Sequence record: PP793740.1
Length of the DNA: 64,000 bases
Direction: 5' to 3' (one strand)
The first letter of the stretch is position 1, and each line of letters starts with the position of its first letter. The translations under genes were made by a program, and so were the position numbers. The notes under the pieces are model-generated. The model searched no databases and was not told where the DNA came from. It saw only the letters and a program-made list of their open reading frames with translations. Positions 27,723-58,738 of this stretch are shown here, in pieces.

Positions 27723-27755
27723 TGTAATATAGATTTCAAAAAAAATTTAATGTAA
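27723..27755 (-). promoter_or_regulatory. phiKZ-type early promoter cassette
   Basis: transcribed strand TTTGAAATCTATATTACA; 33 bp identical to 43189-43221. Confidence 0.8.
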
Positions 27756-27787: not shown

Positions 27788-27895
27788 TTATTTATATTTT
27801 TTCTTATGAGTGTGGTAAATATAGCTAAATAGCATACCGATTGACATTGATACAGCTACCATACCCACATAGAAAAGTTCATTACTAAGTTGCAT
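27788..27895 (-). CDS. 35-aa membrane peptide (not in ORF track)
   Basis: hand translation [35 protein letters not shown]; GAGGA RBS. Confidence 0.65.
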
Positions 27896-27931
27896 TAGAT
27901 TTCCTCAAATAGTTTAATTTATCCCACCTAG

Positions 27932-27975
27932 TTTTAACCGTCCAGTCGGTTAAAAAGAGGACCCGAAGGTCCTCT
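27932..27975 (-). terminator. tandem hairpins / terminator
   Basis: TTTTAACCG-TCCAGT-CGGTTAAAA immediately followed by AGAGGACC-CGAA-GGTCCTCT. Confidence 0.7.
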
Positions 27976-27977
27976 AA

Positions 27978-28217
27978 TTATTTCTTATAACTCTCAGGGC
28001 ATCCCATTTTGAGTTTGCCATCCTTTGGGTCTTCAGCGAATAATACTTCATCTGGACACTTCTTAACAGGAGTGTCCTTCGCCTTATCTTCCCATTCTAC
28101 AACAGGCATTTCTAATTTCTTACGAAATTGATACGTATCATAAAGAACATACGTAATCATTCCCATAAGAGAGATTACCCATACCCATGCAACAATTAGG
28201 ATGATTCTAGTTATCAT
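27978..28217 (-). CDS. small membrane-anchored protein
   Basis: IILIVAWVWVISLMGMITYVLY; two C-terminal Cys. Confidence 0.75.
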   Translation of the reverse strand: MITRIILIVAWVWVISLMGMITYVLYDTYQFRKKLEMPVVEWEDKAKDTPVKKCPDEVLFAEDPKDGKLKMGCPESYKK

Positions 28218-28584
28218 ACAACTCCTCGCCGACTATATTGAAACACCCATTACTGAGTTTTTCAGTCAGCATCTCACCAAGATCACTTCCCTCGCTCTTT
28301 GCCAAAAGCTTAAGTGCGGGATCAGTGAGATTTTGGTATATTACATCGACATTATCCAATGCGATATTAATAGCGAGTGCCTTATCACTCTGGTTTTTAT
28401 CTATGGCAATGGATAGTTCATCTTGCAGTATTGCATACATCTCCAATGGCTCACCGCCATTAGTGTAGAATTGAACCATATTCTTTGCCAAGCTGTGCAG
28501 CACGTAGCAAGATGACACGGTTACGGGTTGTGCATTAACCGACATTGCTACCATAGTGATAATGAGCGAGAAGACGTATTTCAT
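28207..28584 (-). CDS. secreted two-Cys protein, paralogue family
   Basis: signal MKYVFSLIITMVAMSVNA; TVSSC ... GCFNIVG. Confidence 0.75.
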   Translation of the reverse strand: MKYVFSLIITMVAMSVNAQPVTVSSCYVLHSLAKNMVQFYTNGGEPLEMYAILQDELSIAIDKNQSDKALAINIALDNVDVIYQNLTDPALKLLAKSEGSDLGEMLTEKLSNGCFNIVGEELYDN

Positions 28585-28616
28585 CCTATTTTCCTTTTGA
28601 AAGTATTCGATATGAA

Positions 28617-29072
28617 TTAAATGAGTTCAACGATTACCATGTGAGTGAATTTCTCACCAATATGCTTCATGCAGTAATTGCCATAATACCCGCTGATAAA
28701 AGCTGCCAGATTAGGAGTAGTCACATTGTAACCTTGACTACGGATATAATCATGGATCTCTTTACTGTTAAGGTCATTATTGATTTTATTAAGACTATTG
28801 AATACGAATGTTAACGCAATCCAATTATTGGTATCCAACTCATCTTTGAGTTTAGCAGAGTTGTTGAGCATAAGCACACCAACTTCATCTGCGCTATGAC
28901 CTTCACTCATTCGAAATACAGCTTGTTTAGTAATGGTTTCAACCATTGCACACGACTGCACAGTGAGTTGAGCATCTTTTTTACCAATCTTGATTTCAGC
29001 CATTGCGGTATTGAACATGATACCGGTAATGGCAATGAGACCAGCGAAAGCTGCTGCAATTACATTTTTCAT
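28617..29072 (-). CDS. secreted two-Cys protein, paralogue family
   Basis: signal ending AMA; TVQSC ... YCMKHIG. Confidence 0.75.
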   Translation of the reverse strand: MKNVIAAAFAGLIAITGIMFNTAMAEIKIGKKDAQLTVQSCAMVETITKQAVFRMSEGHSADEVGVLMLNNSAKLKDELDTNNWIALTFVFNSLNKINNDLNSKEIHDYIRSQGYNVTTPNLAAFISGYYGNYCMKHIGEKFTHMVIVELI

Positions 29073-29089
29073 TTTAAATCCTTCTTCAT

Positions 29090-29473
29090 TTATTTAATGG
29101 TAAGAATAGTAATTTTTTCAGGATTTACTGGAACTTTAATTTTAGATTTATGTTGGAGAAACTCAACAACCACCATAGACTTATCCATTTTATACACTTC
29201 ACATACTTTGACAAGCCTATCTACTACGCAACCAATTTTACCGGCATTTTGAGAAAAGAAAGATTTTGCTTTTCTAATAGCCTCGCGTTTCTCAAGCATT
29301 TCCATACGCATATTTTCAATATGTTTATCGCGTTGAACACGATTAAACTTACGCATATGTCGTTCGATCTTACTAATTTCAGAAGAGTGTAATGAATAAG
29401 CAGCAGCTTCTTTCAGTTTCTCATATACTTCCACTGCCATTACCACGTGATCATCTTCAAAATTTCTTTTCAT
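29090..29473 (-). CDS. hypothetical protein
   Basis: ORF track; charged helical N-half. Confidence 0.75.
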   Translation of the reverse strand: MKRNFEDDHVVMAVEVYEKLKEAAAYSLHSSEISKIERHMRKFNRVQRDKHIENMRMEMLEKREAIRKAKSFFSQNAGKIGCVVDRLVKVCEVYKMDKSMVVVEFLQHKSKIKVPVNPEKITILTIK

Positions 29474-29486
29474 ATCTATGCCTTTT

Positions 29487-30281
29487 TCACTGTTTGATTA
29501 AATTTGACACTGCTTCTTGTTTACATTGAGTATTCATCCATAATGCAATGTCTTTGGGTTCTTGTCCAGTTTCCACCATATCGATAATGATACGGGTATT
29601 ACGTTGTGCTTTCTCACGGGCATTTAACATATCAGGATCATTAATAATGAATTCCCTACCCATAACTGGATCTAATCCAATATAAGCTTTAGATGCAATA
29701 GTTCTCACCATTGCTTCATATTGGTCACATCCACGTTCAGTTAATACAAGGTTATCTGCATTGGCACTACCGCCAAATAGCAAACCTAGGAATCCATAGA
29801 AAAAAGTGTGACGTATTGTCTTCCAACAAATACGCATCTCTTCATTTTTTGTATAAAGCTTTTCCCAATCAAACATTAAATAGAAACTTTCTTTTTGGAT
29901 AGAAGGGTGTAACCAAATAGGTTTAATACTTACTTCAAGAAGTTTACTATTTGGATTTTTACCAATAAAGATAACTTCAACAATGGCTCGTGCTAAAGCA
30001 TCTTTTTCTTTACCATTCCATCCAAATTTTATTTCATCAGCCGTGATATAAAGACGTATTCCGTCACCCACGTATTTGGGTAACCAAACAGCTTTACCTA
30101 GTTGCATTGGAACACTATTAGGGATCCCCCCAACCATCCAGGTAGCATTGGTGAAATGAATAGCGACATCATCATTTAACCACTTTAGAATAGCTGGCCT
30201 TACCCAGCTATCTACCAAATTACCACATGTCAATGCAGCTAGCATAGCCATGAGTATAATGACAATATAAATACTAACCAT
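29487..30281 (-). CDS. membrane protein with C-terminal two-Cys family domain
   Basis: N-terminal TM; internal FFYGFLGLLFGGSANA then TERGC ... QCKQ. Confidence 0.7.
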   Translation of the reverse strand: MVSIYIVIILMAMLAALTCGNLVDSWVRPAILKWLNDDVAIHFTNATWMVGGIPNSVPMQLGKAVWLPKYVGDGIRLYITADEIKFGWNGKEKDALARAIVEVIFIGKNPNSKLLEVSIKPIWLHPSIQKESFYLMFDWEKLYTKNEEMRICWKTIRHTFFYGFLGLLFGGSANADNLVLTERGCDQYEAMVRTIASKAYIGLDPVMGREFIINDPDMLNAREKAQRNTRIIIDMVETGQEPKDIALWMNTQCKQEAVSNLIKQ

Positions 30282-30284
30282 ATT

Positions 30285-30644
30285 CTACTCCAAGTTAAAT
30301 TTAGTACCAATTGCTTCAACACAGTTTTCAGCTAGCCTATCTAGAATAGCTCCATTGGTAAATCCTTTTCGTTTATTTACGCGAATATCAACTAAGTTTA
30401 ATTTAGCATATACGGTACCTGCATAGAACTCTAAGTCATCCATATCCTTACGAGAGATCATATCTAACTGCATCATTATCTCAAATTGGGATAGGTTCTT
30501 ATCATAAAGCTCAGTTGCTTTTTGTGAAAGATTTACTGCCACATTACATGATTTCTTAGTAATACCCACTTCTACAGCGTGGGCAGGCTGACATGCAATG
30601 GACAGGATTGGCAGGAAAAGGAATAATAGCCAATTCTTAAGCAT
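30285..30644 (-). CDS. secreted two-Cys protein, paralogue family
   Basis: signal ending AHA; TKKSC ... NCVEAIG. Confidence 0.75.
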   Translation of the reverse strand: MLKNWLLFLFLPILSIACQPAHAVEVGITKKSCNVAVNLSQKATELYDKNLSQFEIMMQLDMISRKDMDDLEFYAGTVYAKLNLVDIRVNKRKGFTNGAILDRLAENCVEAIGTKFNLE

Positions 30645-30656
30645 GTTGTACCTCCA

Positions 30657-31064
30657 TTATTTTAGAGTAAGTGGTTTTGCTTCAAACGCACCTGCCGCTA
30701 CACAACGCTGGAAATAACCATCAATGATGAATTTCTCAGGAGTGGTCTTATAGACTTTAGCAGCATTTGTTGCACGTGGCAAACTTGCCTCAATTGCCAT
30801 TTTATCTACCTTAGACCATAGGTAAAATAGACCAGTGAGTTCTTCAACTTTAGACTGGTTGGTCTTTAGATCTTTAGTGTTATTAAGGATATAATGAATC
30901 CTTTCATAAGTCTTCATTTGCACTTCAGTTACAGATGCACCTTTTACAAACAATTCATCTGCCTGTTTTACAAACTCGATGCATGAATCACGATTAGTGT
31001 ACATGACAGCCGAGTTAGCAGTGATAGTTACAATAGACAACATAAATGCAATTACATATTTCAT
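30657..31064 (-). CDS. secreted two-Cys protein, paralogue family
   Basis: signal MKYVIAFMLSIVTITANS; TNRDSC ... RCVAAG. Confidence 0.75.
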   Translation of the reverse strand: MKYVIAFMLSIVTITANSAVMYTNRDSCIEFVKQADELFVKGASVTEVQMKTYERIHYILNNTKDLKTNQSKVEELTGLFYLWSKVDKMAIEASLPRATNAAKVYKTTPEKFIIDGYFQRCVAAGAFEAKPLTLK

Positions 31065-31090
31065 AATGAATTACCTCAAAATTAATTTTA

Positions 31091-31354
31091 TTAACTATTG
31101 GTTTCACCACGAGTATTGAATTCTAAATCCAATACAACTTTAGTAAATTCTTCCAGTGCACCACCCTCGTAGATGAGTGGGTCACTGTCACCCCGGTACA
31201 TGCTACCTACCGGTACTTGACCACGAAACACCATCAGCATATCGTTTTTTACTATGACATGATGTTCATCCCCGACAGCAATGTCTTGGATGTGTCTCCA
31301 GCGTTCACGCAGTAAGCTGCAAGCGCACCATACGGATTTCAAACGTTCAGTCAT
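31091..31354 (-). CDS. hypothetical protein
   Basis: first gene after promoter motif. Confidence 0.7.
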   Translation of the reverse strand: MTERLKSVWCACSLLRERWRHIQDIAVGDEHHVIVKNDMLMVFRGQVPVGSMYRGDSDPLIYEGGALEEFTKVVLDLEFNTRGETNS

Positions 31355-31386
31355 TGTATTGCCCTCTTGGTTATTAAATTCATATT

Positions 31387-31410
31387 TGTAATATAGCTTT
31401 TTAAATAGTT
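31387..31410 (-). promoter_or_regulatory. phiKZ-type early promoter
   Basis: transcribed strand TTTAAAAAGCTATATTACA. Confidence 0.75.
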
Positions 31411-31434
31411 TAAATACAAAAAAAGATAAATAAA

Positions 31435-31454
31435 ACCCTCCCCGAAGGGAGGGT
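31435..31454 (-). terminator. terminator
   Basis: ACCCTCCC-CGAA-GGGAGGGT. Confidence 0.8.
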
Positions 31455-34527: not shown

Positions 34528-34857
34528 TTATCTGTTAACTACACGGTAATTATCAATAATAAAATCGATATGTTGTTCAACCTCAGCTAGGAAACACCCA
34601 TAGGTGAATCGATCTAGTTTATTAAGGGCCTCAGTTAGTAGAGGTTCGATATAAATATTTACTTCAGCTGTTGAGGGTACTTCTACATATTTGTTTTCAT
34701 ATTCGGTGAGTTTCTCTTTTACTTTTGTCAATTGCTTTTTATAATAGATTTCCATAGCCAGTTCTTTATAAACTGAATGCACACCATTGCAAATGCTATA
34801 ACCAAATGCCAGTCCGCCCAGCACCAGAATACCAGTAGAAATAGTGGACATATTCAT
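34528..34857 (-). CDS. small membrane-anchored protein
   Basis: ISTGILVLGGLAFGYSIC; flanked by promoter and terminator. Confidence 0.75.
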   Translation of the reverse strand: MNMSTISTGILVLGGLAFGYSICNGVHSVYKELAMEIYYKKQLTKVKEKLTEYENKYVEVPSTAEVNIYIEPLLTEALNKLDRFTYGCFLAEVEQHIDFIIDNYRVVNR

Positions 34858-41327: not shown

Positions 41328-41585
41328 CTATTTATTTACACAGATTAGAGTATGTTCTACTTTACTGGTACTAGAAGAAAAATAACGTAATAGAACACCA
41401 TCGCTGATTTTTACAGTCTCTACATTATTACGAATAGCACTTGCTTTAGCTAGTTTTTGAATACGCTCAATCGCGCTAAAACAAGTAGTCATGTCAGAGA
41501 ACTCAGTGGTTGACTGCGATGCACCATTGGCTTGATAACCAGCGATACTGATACTACTAAAAAGAATTGCTAAAGTTGCATTCAT
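41328..41585 (-). CDS. small secreted or membrane protein with two Cys
   Basis: hydrophobic N-terminus; EFSDMTTC ... LICV. Confidence 0.7.
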   Translation of the reverse strand: MNATLAILFSSISIAGYQANGASQSTTEFSDMTTCFSAIERIQKLAKASAIRNNVETVKISDGVLLRYFSSSTSKVEHTLICVNK

Positions 41586-43254: not shown

Positions 43255-43545
43255 TTATTTATTTTTCTTTCTTGACTTATCTTTAATAACTAAGTCTAAT
43301 GCTTCAAACATTTTAACAGCAGTTAAATGGTCGATAGAGTATGCCTTTTTACGTAAACGTCCAATAGCTACTGTATACTGGTATTCAGATAAACCATCAC
43401 TCATATTGTCAATAATTGATAGTGCTTCTTTATAAAGCCTGTTACACTTTATCGTGTGTTTGATGGCATAATAACCCCAGTTAATTAAAGCCATCATTAT
43501 AATCAGAAACAAAATACCTATAATTACTGTCATGATATCATTCAT
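43255..43545 (-). CDS. small membrane-anchored protein
   Basis: N-terminal TM; IIDNMSDGLSEYQY. Confidence 0.7.
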   Translation of the reverse strand: MNDIMTVIIGILFLIIMMALINWGYYAIKHTIKCNRLYKEALSIIDNMSDGLSEYQYTVAIGRLRKKAYSIDHLTAVKMFEALDLVIKDKSRKKNK

Positions 43546-43855
43546 TTGCTGTTTCCCTATTATTACATTTTAATATAATCAATGAGTTGATATCGTAAAT
43601 AAAAGATGTAAAAATATGTTGATTTGTTATTTTAGATGATTCTTTATCTATAATGTCTTGGACAGCATTTTGATAGAAAAAATAACTTATGCCATTGGGC
43701 ATTTTATCTAATACATATCTAACCTTATAAACACCCATCCAGTGAATATAATGATTTTTTATATTAATAATGAAAGTTACACATGTTGATATAGCCGTTA
43801 GTGTTATCATTGATATAACAAATACTTTATACATTTGCAACCCACAGATTCTCAT
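43538..43855 (-). CDS. small membrane-anchored protein, paralogue of 43255
   Basis: N-terminal TM; VLDKMPNGISYFFY. Confidence 0.7.
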   Translation of the reverse strand: MRICGLQMYKVFVISMITLTAISTCVTFIINIKNHYIHWMGVYKVRYVLDKMPNGISYFFYQNAVQDIIDKESSKITNQHIFTSFIYDINSLIILKCNNRETANE

Positions 43856-43890: not shown

Positions 43891-44259
43891 TTATTTTACA
43901 ACCACAGCTTTACCGTAGTTGTTATCCATACAGGTTTTAAATGATGTAACGTATGCATCACGTGGGCTTTGTCTACGTGAATACACAACGTGCACCTCTT
44001 TAATTGCTGCTGGGAGAACATTGTAAAGAACGTTATCTTTGTTCTTCACGCCGTACCCTTTTAGGGATCGTAGGTTTTCTTCCCATTGTAAAATGGGTGT
44101 TTTACGCTGACGTGCTTCTGCTGTGGCATGTGCTATAAGTGCAACACCATTACAGTAATTCTCGTCAACTACCAACGATGCAGCTAGTGGGTTTGATACG
44201 TATAACAACGTACTTAATACGGCCACTAACTTCATTACGTGTGTTAAACATTGCATCAC
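43891..44259 (-). CDS. secreted two-Cys protein, outlying paralogue
   Basis: signal MKLVAVLSTLLYVSNPLAA; DENYC ... TCMDNNYG. Confidence 0.7.
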   Translation of the reverse strand: MMQCLTHVMKLVAVLSTLLYVSNPLAASLVVDENYCNGVALIAHATAEARQRKTPILQWEENLRSLKGYGVKNKDNVLYNVLPAAIKEVHVVYSRRQSPRDAYVTSFKTCMDNNYGKAVVVK

Positions 44260-58715: not shown

Positions 58716-58738
58716 TGTAATATAGATTTAAATTAATT
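58716..58738 (-). promoter_or_regulatory. phiKZ-type early promoter opening the leftward block
   Basis: transcribed strand AATTTAAATCTATATTACA. Confidence 0.75.

Follow-up and report, generated by a model that had tools for sequence, protein, structure and literature searches.

The transcription unit and its genes

We analyzed a stretch of 64,000 nucleotides from sequence record PP793740.1 (hereafter, the window), focusing on a run of eight genes, several of which encode small, predicted exported proteins with two cysteines each. The window is from a phiKZ-type Pseudomonas jumbo phage: the region at 27900–31500 matches Pseudomonas phage vB_PaM_W10-2 with 100% identity and phiKZ with 99.9%. 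The window is AT-rich (GC content, ∼35%), and almost all of its genes are on the minus strand, which is the strand of every window feature located below. The eight open reading frames (ORFs) of the run correspond to PHIKZ246.1, 247, 248, 249, 250, 251, 252, and 253, none of which has a function assigned in NC_004629, and an outlying gene at 43891–44259 corresponds to PHIKZ229.

The eight genes form one minus-strand unit, which is bounded by a phiKZ early-promoter motif and two intrinsic terminators. The gene preceding it on the same strand encodes gp246, an HD-domain phosphohydrolase (Pfam HD_4), and the gp246 unit is closed by the first terminator (31435–31454; an 8-bp GC-rich stem, a 4-nt loop, and a T-run), which is the upstream boundary of the run. 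Approximately 40 bases beyond this hairpin, after a T-run and a TTTAAA-type element, the octamer TATATTAC occurs at 31395–31388; together with the T-rich stretch, it makes up an early-type promoter at 31388–31432. The second terminator, which ends the unit at 27956–27975, consists of GAGGACC-TTCG-GGTCCTC followed by TTTTT; being palindromic, this hairpin was recorded on the plus strand in the hairpin scan. Plausible Shine-Dalgarno sites were found for all eight genes. A preliminary description of this DNA, made from the sequence alone, had proposed a single unit running from a promoter near 31387 to a terminator at 27956, and both the motif and the GC hairpin were located there.

The first gene of the unit is PHIKZ246.1 (31091–31354, 87 amino acids [aa]), which has a good Shine-Dalgarno site and is annotated in NC_004629; there is no space for it in a related metagenomic contig, L013 (see below), in which the flanking genes are only 132 nt apart. 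PHIKZ247 (30657–31064, 135 aa) encodes a signal peptide with a predicted cut after residue 19 (ANSA/V), followed by a 116-aa helical domain with two cysteines, and PHIKZ248 (30285–30644, 119 aa) encodes a signal peptide with a predicted cut after residue 23 (AHA/V), or else a lipobox-like LSIAC18, and a 96-aa helical two-cysteine domain. PHIKZ249 (29487–30281, 264 aa) encodes a two-part membrane protein, of which the C-terminal 89 residues (29487–29756) form a two-cysteine domain. Next come PHIKZ250 (29090–29473, 127 aa; phrog_26931 and, in part, phrog_18482), the product of which is 59% identical in L013 with a ratio of nonsynonymous to synonymous substitution rates (dN/dS) of 0.23, and PHIKZ251 (28617–29072, 151 aa), with a signal peptide (AMA/E, after residue 25) and a 126-aa two-cysteine domain. 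PHIKZ252 (28207–28584, 125 aa) combines a signal peptide (VNA/Q, after residue 18) with a very acidic 107-aa two-cysteine domain. The last gene, PHIKZ253 (27978–28217, 79 aa), overlaps the end of the gp252 gene by 11 nt and encodes an N-terminal transmembrane anchor and a tail of ∼50 aa that carries a cysteine pair, C54 and C73. The outlying PHIKZ229 (121–122 aa) encodes a signal peptide (LAA/S) and a basic 95-aa two-cysteine domain.

The early type of the promoter, as assigned in the preliminary description, agrees with published work: TATATTAC has been given as a phiKZ promoter (PMC7058600), and the phiKZ early motif has been described as combining a T-rich element with an extended −10 box (PMC8244752). 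The motif is also kept in relatives, being placed directly before the array in L013, L011, phiPA3, and HPP-Temi, and again directly after the array in eight relatives. As a bare octamer, TATATTAC is mildly over-represented in the window (15 observed vs. 8.75 expected). Eight of its 12 minus-strand copies are intergenic, have an extended pattern in common, and mostly occur directly after a terminator hairpin. The extended architecture of the unit's own site (31395) is shared by the intergenic sites at 58724, 43197, 34901, 34469, 27731, 25046, and 13690, all on the minus strand. These eight sites come in two extended flavors, one in which '...TTTTTTTGTATTTAAA..TTTAAA.AG' and one in which '...ACATTAAATTTTTTTTGAAATC' immediately precedes TATATTAC. 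Past the terminator of the unit, the next early-type motif is at 27731–27724. Between the terminators at 27975–27956 and 27778–27759 there is a 35-codon ORF, PHIKZ253.1 (∼27790–27894), which encodes a hydrophobic peptide and has its own Shine-Dalgarno site, with no early-type motif before it.

Export signals, cysteine pairs, and membrane proteins

Signal peptides were called by inspection, on the basis of a basic n-region, a hydrophobic h-region of 7–17 residues, and small residues at positions −3/−1. In this way, Sec-type signal peptides were recognized in gp247, gp248, gp251, gp252, and gp229, and in at least 14 relatives. Such signals had previously been proposed for the products of the four unit genes at 28207, 28617, 30285, and 30657, and in each of these the n-region, the h-region, and a small-x-small site are present. 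Of the six signal-peptide ORFs among the ∼111 genes of the window, four are clustered within eight consecutive genes (crude scan-corrected p ∼0.02). With the two membrane proteins gp249 and gp253 included, six of the eight products of the unit, i.e., all but gp246.1 and gp250, which have no export signal, appear to be aimed at the envelope.

The mature parts of the window proteins contain exactly two cysteines, the first 8–23 residues past the predicted cut and the second 11–22 residues from the C-terminus. When phage and metagenome relatives were included, all 41 mature domains, from six subfamilies, had exactly two cysteines, in invariant alignment columns; the individual motifs quoted earlier for the first and second cysteines (TVSSC, CFNIVG, and others) are present as written. 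Cysteine pairs in the periplasm are in general oxidized by DsbA. The present proteins are only predicted to be exported, to lose their signal peptides, and to form disulfides. The isoelectric points (pI) of the mature domains span a wide range, from 4.2 (gp252) to 9.4 (gp229).

A loose two-cysteine pattern was also found in five other ORFs of the window, so the cysteine pattern alone is not diagnostic. When it was combined with a signal peptide, the selection was reduced to gp247, gp248, gp251, gp252, gp229, and one small ORF at 41328–41585. The agreement for gp229 extends to the predicted fold (see below), and its gene is the sixth copy that had been placed at 43891. The small ORF encodes 85 aa with a signal-peptide-like N-terminus and cysteines C35 and C82, and has no detectable similarity to the two-cysteine family; the phiKZ reference has two shorter ORFs, PHIKZ232.1 and 232.2, at roughly the same place. 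Signal-peptide two-cysteine ORFs of 82–85 aa are also present a few kilobases upstream of the arrays in Psa21, RVTF4, and D6 (L006 1650–1898, L008 1247–1504, and L009 887–1141), and their homology to the window ORF is not demonstrated. Two other neighbors have envelope-like features. PHIKZ241 (34528–34857) encodes an N-terminal hydrophobic segment and cysteines C23 and C88, and may therefore be membrane-associated too. Directly downstream of PHIKZ229, at 43255–43855, PHIKZ230 and 230.1 (105 and 96 aa) encode one strong transmembrane segment each, so that PHIKZ229–230.1 would constitute a second small cluster of envelope-directed proteins.

In gp248, the export signal can be read in two ways. 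Most gp248-like proteins have a cysteine that ends the hydrophobic core (LSIAC, FVGC, or FTGC), and gp248 may be a lipoprotein, i.e., lipidated instead of cut by signal peptidase I. The lipobox looked for was [LVI][ASTVI][GAS]C, closing the h-region. Among 18 gp248-like proteins, a permissive PROSITE-style lipobox pattern matched 10 and a strict pattern matched none, and two orthologues do not have the cysteine. An A-x-A-type site five residues past the lipobox-like cysteine is kept in nearly all of them.

The product of PHIKZ249 consists of five parts: an N-terminal hydrophobic transmembrane segment, a cysteine-free domain of ∼125 residues, a basic stretch, a signal-like hydrophobic segment, and the two-cysteine domain. 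The internal signal-like segment, encoded at ∼29757–29837, ends in a small-x-small site (SANA/D), and the two-cysteine domain opens with L[TS]E[RS]GC. Charge bias suggests that the first segment is oriented N-out, that the middle domain is cytoplasmic, and that the C-terminal domain is exported. This architecture is kept in L013, at 70% identity; in L011, which is distant and in which the N-terminal domain is homologous with an E-value of 2e-19; and in L010 as far as that contig extends. The gene follows a gp248-like gene. Based on these comparisons, gp249 is a conserved two-part membrane protein. The preliminary description had regarded the C-terminal half as a fused fifth copy, and it was right about the two-cysteine domain there; the notion of a chance fusion gave way to that of a conserved two-part protein. 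Three other origins were considered for this gene. A nested gene starting at an internal methionine was rejected because the Shine-Dalgarno spacing is poor and the methionine is absent from L011 and L010, although the architecture is kept in both. Because the two halves have been kept as a pair in L013 and L011, a recent accidental fusion was rejected. Finally, a fusion involving the cytoplasmic gene located between the two copies of Psa21, RVTF4, and D6 was rejected because no similarity to that gene was found.

The last product, gp253, has one membrane segment and a tail with a conserved cysteine pair, and is a further cysteine-pair membrane protein of the unit, beyond those listed in the preliminary description. 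At 96% identity in L013, it is the most conserved product of the unit. In the L011 homologue, the N-terminus is strongly basic, and this favors an N-in, C-out orientation with the tail in the periplasm.

Family relationships, predicted fold, and distribution

Pairwise comparison of the six proteins with BLASTP and phmmer gave weak links, which ran in part through the signal peptides, and the comparison was therefore redone on the mature domains with subfamily profiles. The subfamily alignments, from which signal peptides were removed, were compiled from database matches and from syntenic relatives (phiPA3 gp303, Phabio 362, PS119XW gp300–302, HPP-Temi, Psa21, RVTF4, D6, and the metagenomic contigs L010, L011, and L013). 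In profile–profile comparisons, the gp248 family aligned with the gp251 family over the full length (probability 85%, P = 6e-6), as did the gp251 family with gp252 (probability 81%, P = 1.2e-5), and the gp248 family matched gp252 with P = 6e-4. A C-terminal motif, C-x4-G-x-[KE]-[FIY], is common to gp248, gp251, and gp252, and at the level of sequence profiles the homology of these three proteins is proven. From sequence, the paralogy earlier proposed for all six proteins can be demonstrated only for this core, which the all-versus-all comparison of mature domains connected by three links; gp247, the C-terminal domain of gp249 (gp249C), and gp229 received none, and are joined to the core by predicted fold and cysteine geometry.

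The mature gp248 domain was modeled by AlphaFold2 from an alignment of 15 sequences with a predicted local distance difference test score (pLDDT) of 95.5 and a predicted template modeling score (pTM) of 0.85. In the model, five helices are framed by two short strands; Cys10 is located in helix 1, and Cys85 in the final helix. For the mature part of gp247, which was modeled from four sequences, the best model (pLDDT 83.8) has the order β-H-H-H-H-β, with the first cysteine at residue 4 of helix 1 and the second four residues before the end of the last helix, i.e., with the same geometry as in gp248. The two models therefore bear out the helical nature that had been claimed for the mature parts, both consisting of four or five helices between strands.

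We then used the gp248 model as a query against BFVD. Its own orthologues were recovered with template modeling scores (TMq) of 0.80–0.93. Two further matches were verified as homologues of window proteins: PS119XW gp264 (A0A5C1K8Y4), a PHIKZ229 homologue (TMq 0.78, root mean square deviation [rmsd] 2.6, probability 1.0), and PS119XW gp302 (A0A5C1K949), a gp247 homologue (TMq 0.69, probability 0.91). A 151-aa entry, which from its length is probably the gp251 of a phiKZ-type phage, matched with TMq 0.74, and a 264-aa entry, by the same token probably gp249, matched with TMq 0.72 (rmsd 1.7, 85 columns). A shared predicted fold, which the preliminary description had put up for comparison, was thus recovered from gp248 to gp229-, gp249-, gp251-, and gp247-like proteins at TMq 0.69–0.78. 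The gp248 model also matched, with confident probabilities, B3FJU6 of 201phi2-1 (161 aa, TMq 0.76) and A0A1Y0SWC8 of Phabio (157 aa, TMq 0.79); a weaker match (TMq 0.54) was to a "lipoprotein" encoded by BcepSauron, a jumbo phage of Burkholderia. These fold matches suggest that members may be more numerous and more distant than sequence searches show.

Taken together, these results support one fold family. Membership is proven from sequence for gp248, gp251, and gp252; gp247, gp249C, and gp229 are placed in the family by predicted fold, cysteine geometry, signal peptide, and tandem synteny. In PHROGs, the six proteins belong to six separate families without functions (gp247, 27482; gp248, 15284; gp249, 22383; gp251, 22400; gp252, 26535; gp229, 16193), and the only cross-family hint there is gp251 matching the gp248 family with an E-value of 0.0026. 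Thus, families that PHROGs keep unrelated are here joined into one. What appears to be new is this union of six "unknown" families in one exported two-cysteine fold family, and the recognition of gp249 as its membrane-embedded version. Sequence searches of Pfam, NCBIfam, and PDB returned no relative and no catalytic family, and the preliminary description, which recognized no named family, is upheld by these empty searches and by the lack of functions in PHROGs.

The family is confined to relatives of phiKZ. phiKZ has five copies in the unit and gp229; PS119XW and HPP-Temi have three tandem copies and a gp229-like gene; phiPA3 has gp303 and gp269; and Psa21, RVTF4, and D6 have two copies with a cytoplasmic gene between them. 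The most widespread member is gp248, with orthologues in phiPA3 (gp303), Phabio, PS119XW, Psa21, D6, RVTF4, and 201phi2-1. Relatives of gp251 were found in PS119XW, HPP-Temi, Psa21, RVTF4, D6, and L011, homologues of gp247 in PS119XW (gp302) and P0085, and gp229 is kept as phiPA3 gp269, 201phi2-1 gp343, and PS119XW gp264. By tblastn, gp251 and gp249 were detected only in phages of the phiKZ species, and gp248 and gp229 across the Pseudomonas phiKZ-like genera. Word-based searches returned close relatives only, and the one phage recovered from IMG/VR with gp248 as the query was near-identical. When a profile of gp248, gp251, and gp252 was run with HMMER against all 1.84 billion cluster representatives, 13 proteins scored at E ≤ 1e-3, all of them evident family members. 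No cellular homologue was found among these representatives at HMMER sensitivity, so there is no bacterial function to borrow. From these searches, the unit is kept in order and restricted to Pseudomonas phiKZ-like phages. The 90%-identity clusters of gp247, gp249, gp251, gp252, and gp229 also contain many partial "Klebsiella pneumoniae" proteins from contigs of 210–635 bp (MFO5...) and several full-length "Pseudomonas aeruginosa" copies on phage-sized contigs (274–280 kb). These copies look like phiKZ-type phage DNA in bacterial assemblies, as contamination or in a carrier state, and not like bacterial genes.

Two of the contigs used here, L011 (Logan SRR23684510, 47 kb) and L013 (Logan SRR33991144, 6.4 kb), represent undescribed phiKZ-like phages. 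L011 is much the more distant, and has the order HD hydrolase, gp248-, gp249-, gp251-, and gp253-like genes, with an NAD-dependent DNA ligase gene inserted after the HD gene. L013 has ∼75% protein identity over gp244–gp255 and keeps the gp246–gp255 order with nearly the same gene lengths. Relative to L013, dN/dS is 0.03–0.23 over the genes of the unit and 0.03–0.16 for the five exported-protein genes for which it could be measured; dS is saturated, and gp251 was not measurable. The values for the exported proteins are similar to those for the neighboring genes. Every cysteine of gp247, 248, 249, 251, 252, and 253 is in place in L013, and cysteine positions in the cytoplasmic gp245, gp246, and gp250 vary. 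From these alignments, we conclude that the genes are real and under purifying selection. Rapid diversifying selection was rejected because dN/dS is low at a divergence of ∼75% identity; the family, which had been called "diversified", shows no sign of this in the sense of fast evolution.

Proposed role and alternatives

In Churi, a phiKZ-like phage, the proteins for this region are identical or near-identical to those of the window. Mass spectrometry revealed its gp248 homologue 15 min after infection in each of two set-ups; the protein was classed as non-virion and did not inhibit the growth of PAO1 on overexpression (PMC11849849), which fits an early accessory protein. The direct expression evidence thus comes from one paper and concerns one member. 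In NC_004629, none of gp246.1–253 is annotated as structural, and gp244 and gp228 are so annotated. Both observations agree with the earlier expectation that these are not ordinary late virion proteins. The unit falls in the orf184–304 block of phiKZ, which is largely non-essential and possibly host-interaction-related according to transposon sequencing (TnSeq), and the same study reported gp241 as an activator of the Juk anti-jumbo-phage defense (10.1101/2025.11.23.690004). Apart from the entry in the Churi table, we found no paper that names PHIKZ247–253.

We consider it probable, with modest confidence, that PHIKZ246.1–253 and PHIKZ229 encode a family of small envelope-targeted binding modules of phiKZ-like Pseudomonas phages, with superinfection exclusion or receptor blocking as the candidate role. 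The virion RNA polymerase would transcribe the unit from the early promoter soon after injection. Sec would export gp247, gp248, gp251, gp252, and gp229, and signal peptidase I would cut them, gp248 perhaps being lipidated instead. In the periplasm, the two invariant cysteines, the first at residue 4 of helix 1 and the second 3–4 residues before the end of the last helix, would form one disulfide that staples a compact bundle of four to five helices between β-strands. In gp249, which would cross the membrane with two segments, the same domain would face the periplasm and the cysteine-free domain the other side, and gp253 would be a small membrane-anchored cysteine-pair protein. The absence of a catalytic signature and the pI range of 4.2–9.4 suggest binding modules with different targets for each paralogue. 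The stapled bundles would thus be stable and non-enzymatic, each engaging a different component of the host envelope, and their net role would be to shield the envelope of the infected cell from further phage attack or envelope-based interference.

Among the specific functions, superinfection exclusion or receptor blocking is ranked first, as the leading but unproven candidate; inhibition of periplasmic enzymes or envelope defenses comes second, and saposin-type lipid binding and lysis timing come last, all of them hypothetical. The interpretation in the preliminary description is partly supported; the roles it had put forward, namely superinfection exclusion, shutdown of a receptor (pilus or flagellum), and interference with envelope stress, are hypothetical as well. 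Early exported proteins for superinfection exclusion are known from virulent phages, namely the Llp lipoprotein of T5 and Imm and Sp of T4. Like these proteins, the present ones are small products of a lytic phage that would be made early, targeted to the envelope through a signal peptide, lipobox, or anchor, dispensable in laboratory culture, and non-enzymatic. They differ in being multi-copy and paralogous, and in having a conserved disulfide-type cysteine pair and a predicted helical bundle, and they show no sequence, PHROG, or fold match to the known proteins. For T4 RI, T4 Imm and Sp, and T5 Llp alike, no match was found in Pfam, PHROGs, or NCBIfam, and none was among the PDB fold matches of the gp248 and gp247 models.

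Several observations weigh against this interpretation, some against the unity of the family and some against the role. For gp247, gp249C, and gp229, no sequence-profile signal to the core family was found (P ≥ 0.0026), and the alignments are out of register. The other four of the five gp247 models are poor (pLDDT 51–61), and the gp248 model matches the BFVD model of PA7 gp247 only weakly (TMq 0.40), which makes gp247 the least secure member of the modeled family. The two BFVD entries matched as gp251 and gp249 (A0A494W8Q1 and A0A494WC04) were identified from their lengths only. With regard to the role, purifying selection without raised dN/dS is not what is expected from a fast arms race over receptors. 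In addition, coinfection of one cell by phiKZ-like phages has been described (PMC12908238), so that exclusion cannot be absolute.

The alternative that fares best is that the proteins inhibit host periplasmic enzymes or factors of envelope defense and competition, e.g., peptidoglycan hydrolases, proteases, or defense sensors, and stabilize the envelope during a long infection instead of keeping other phages out. The range of pI values among the paralogues would fit several distinct targets; early expression, the non-toxic gp248 homologue, and the largely non-essential block are compatible with inhibitors, and other host-interaction genes, such as that for gp241, are nearby. No known periplasmic inhibitor fold was returned in the PDB searches with the gp248 and gp247 models, and the present data do not separate this explanation from binding modules for exclusion or receptor blocking. 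We regard it as possible but doubtful.

An unlikely alternative is that the proteins are saposin-like and lipid-binding, the bundle opening so that lipids of the host envelope (phospholipid, lipid A, or the acyl chains of lipoproteins) are bound or extracted; the proteins would then remodel the membranes of the infected cell and would not have protein targets. This idea arises from the comparison of the gp248 model with PDB, in which no match was significant, and in which five of the ten best matches had the saposin fold (TMt 0.55–0.68, probability up to 0.90, E-values 0.6–1.4). These five were saposin A in 4uex (probability 0.90, TMq 0.59, TMt 0.68), 2dob (TMt 0.68, rmsd 2.9), saposin C in 2gtg, Na-SLP-1 in 3s63, and the prophytepsin swaposin insert in 1qdm. 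Members of the saposin-like (SAPLIP) family and the phage proteins are both bundles of ∼80–100 residues with four or five helices, in which a disulfide ties the first helix to the last, as is predicted in the phage family, and several weak BFVD matches are annotated as lipoproteins, such as that of BcepSauron (see above). On the other side, all E-values in PDB are at least 0.6, chance matches are common for small helical bundles, and for the gp247 model no saposin was among the top 50 PDB matches, the best TM-score being 0.41. Furthermore, the phage proteins have two cysteines, whereas saposins have six that form three disulfides, their terminal β-strands are not a saposin feature, and there is no Pfam SapB match. 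Membership of the SAPLIP family was rejected on the cysteine count and the missing sequence signature, and the resemblance, which is plausible, is kept as a weak lead.

A broader form of this idea, to which we attach still a little less probability, is that of a new fold family of single-disulfide saposin-like bundles that bind or move envelope lipids, with the copy in gp249 coupling the periplasm to the cytoplasm. If it were true, nucleus-forming phages would have an early program of envelope remodeling or sensing, and the superinfection signal that leads to lysis inhibition might have its missing receiver in the unit.

Very improbable, in our view, is a role of the proteins as periplasmic sensors or regulators of lysis timing, in which gp249 would sense the signal of a secondary infection through its two-cysteine domain and relay it, by way of its cytoplasmic domain, to the holin–regulator pair gp142/gp143. 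T4 RI, a small, exported, helical antiholin of the periplasm, would be the analogue, and gp249 has a conserved design, in which the membrane is predicted to separate its two domains. In phiKZ, lysis is slower at high multiplicity, and a lysis-inhibition system with a periplasmic signal receiver has been suggested (PMC12894885). The likeness to RI stops at size, export, helices, and this lysis-inhibition-like behavior: there is no sequence or fold similarity, RI–T structures were not among the PDB matches, and the unit is distant from and unlinked to the lysis cassette gp141–144. Only a small domain of the phiKZ holin is periplasmic, and its regulator acts in the cytoplasm; the topology of gp249 was derived from charge bias only. 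Least probable of all, and scarcely credible, is that there is no common family and that signal peptide, two cysteines, and helices converged in unrelated small neighboring ORFs: the missing profile links of gp247, gp249C, and gp229 and the loose two-cysteine pattern elsewhere in the window would allow it, but gp248, gp251, and gp252 align over the full length at P ∼1e-5, fold matches at TMq 0.69–0.78 tie in the other three groups, two independent models (gp248 and gp247) have identical cysteine geometry, and the tandem arrangement recurs in PS119XW, HPP-Temi, Psa21, RVTF4, D6, L011, and L013.

Early exported accessory proteins of lytic phages are a known kind of protein, and the two-cysteine family looks structurally novel within it, as a small, predicted disulfide-stapled bundle without a solved relative. 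Work on phiKZ and other nucleus-forming phages has centered on the cytoplasm, i.e., on the phage nucleus, early vesicles, RNA polymerases, and ribosome takeover, and in a 2025 review of nucleus-forming phages the words periplasm, secreted, and envelope are absent. Given the export signals and the conserved cysteine pair, it is very likely that phiKZ delivers a group of related proteins to the host envelope. The conserved early unit and its outlying copy suggest that phage control extends to the cell envelope and starts in the first minutes of infection. This bears on how these phages handle superinfection, on how high multiplicity is sensed when lysis is delayed, and on how they meet defenses located in the envelope. 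Relatives of phiKZ are used in phage therapy work, so the effects of these proteins on the Pseudomonas envelope are also of practical interest.

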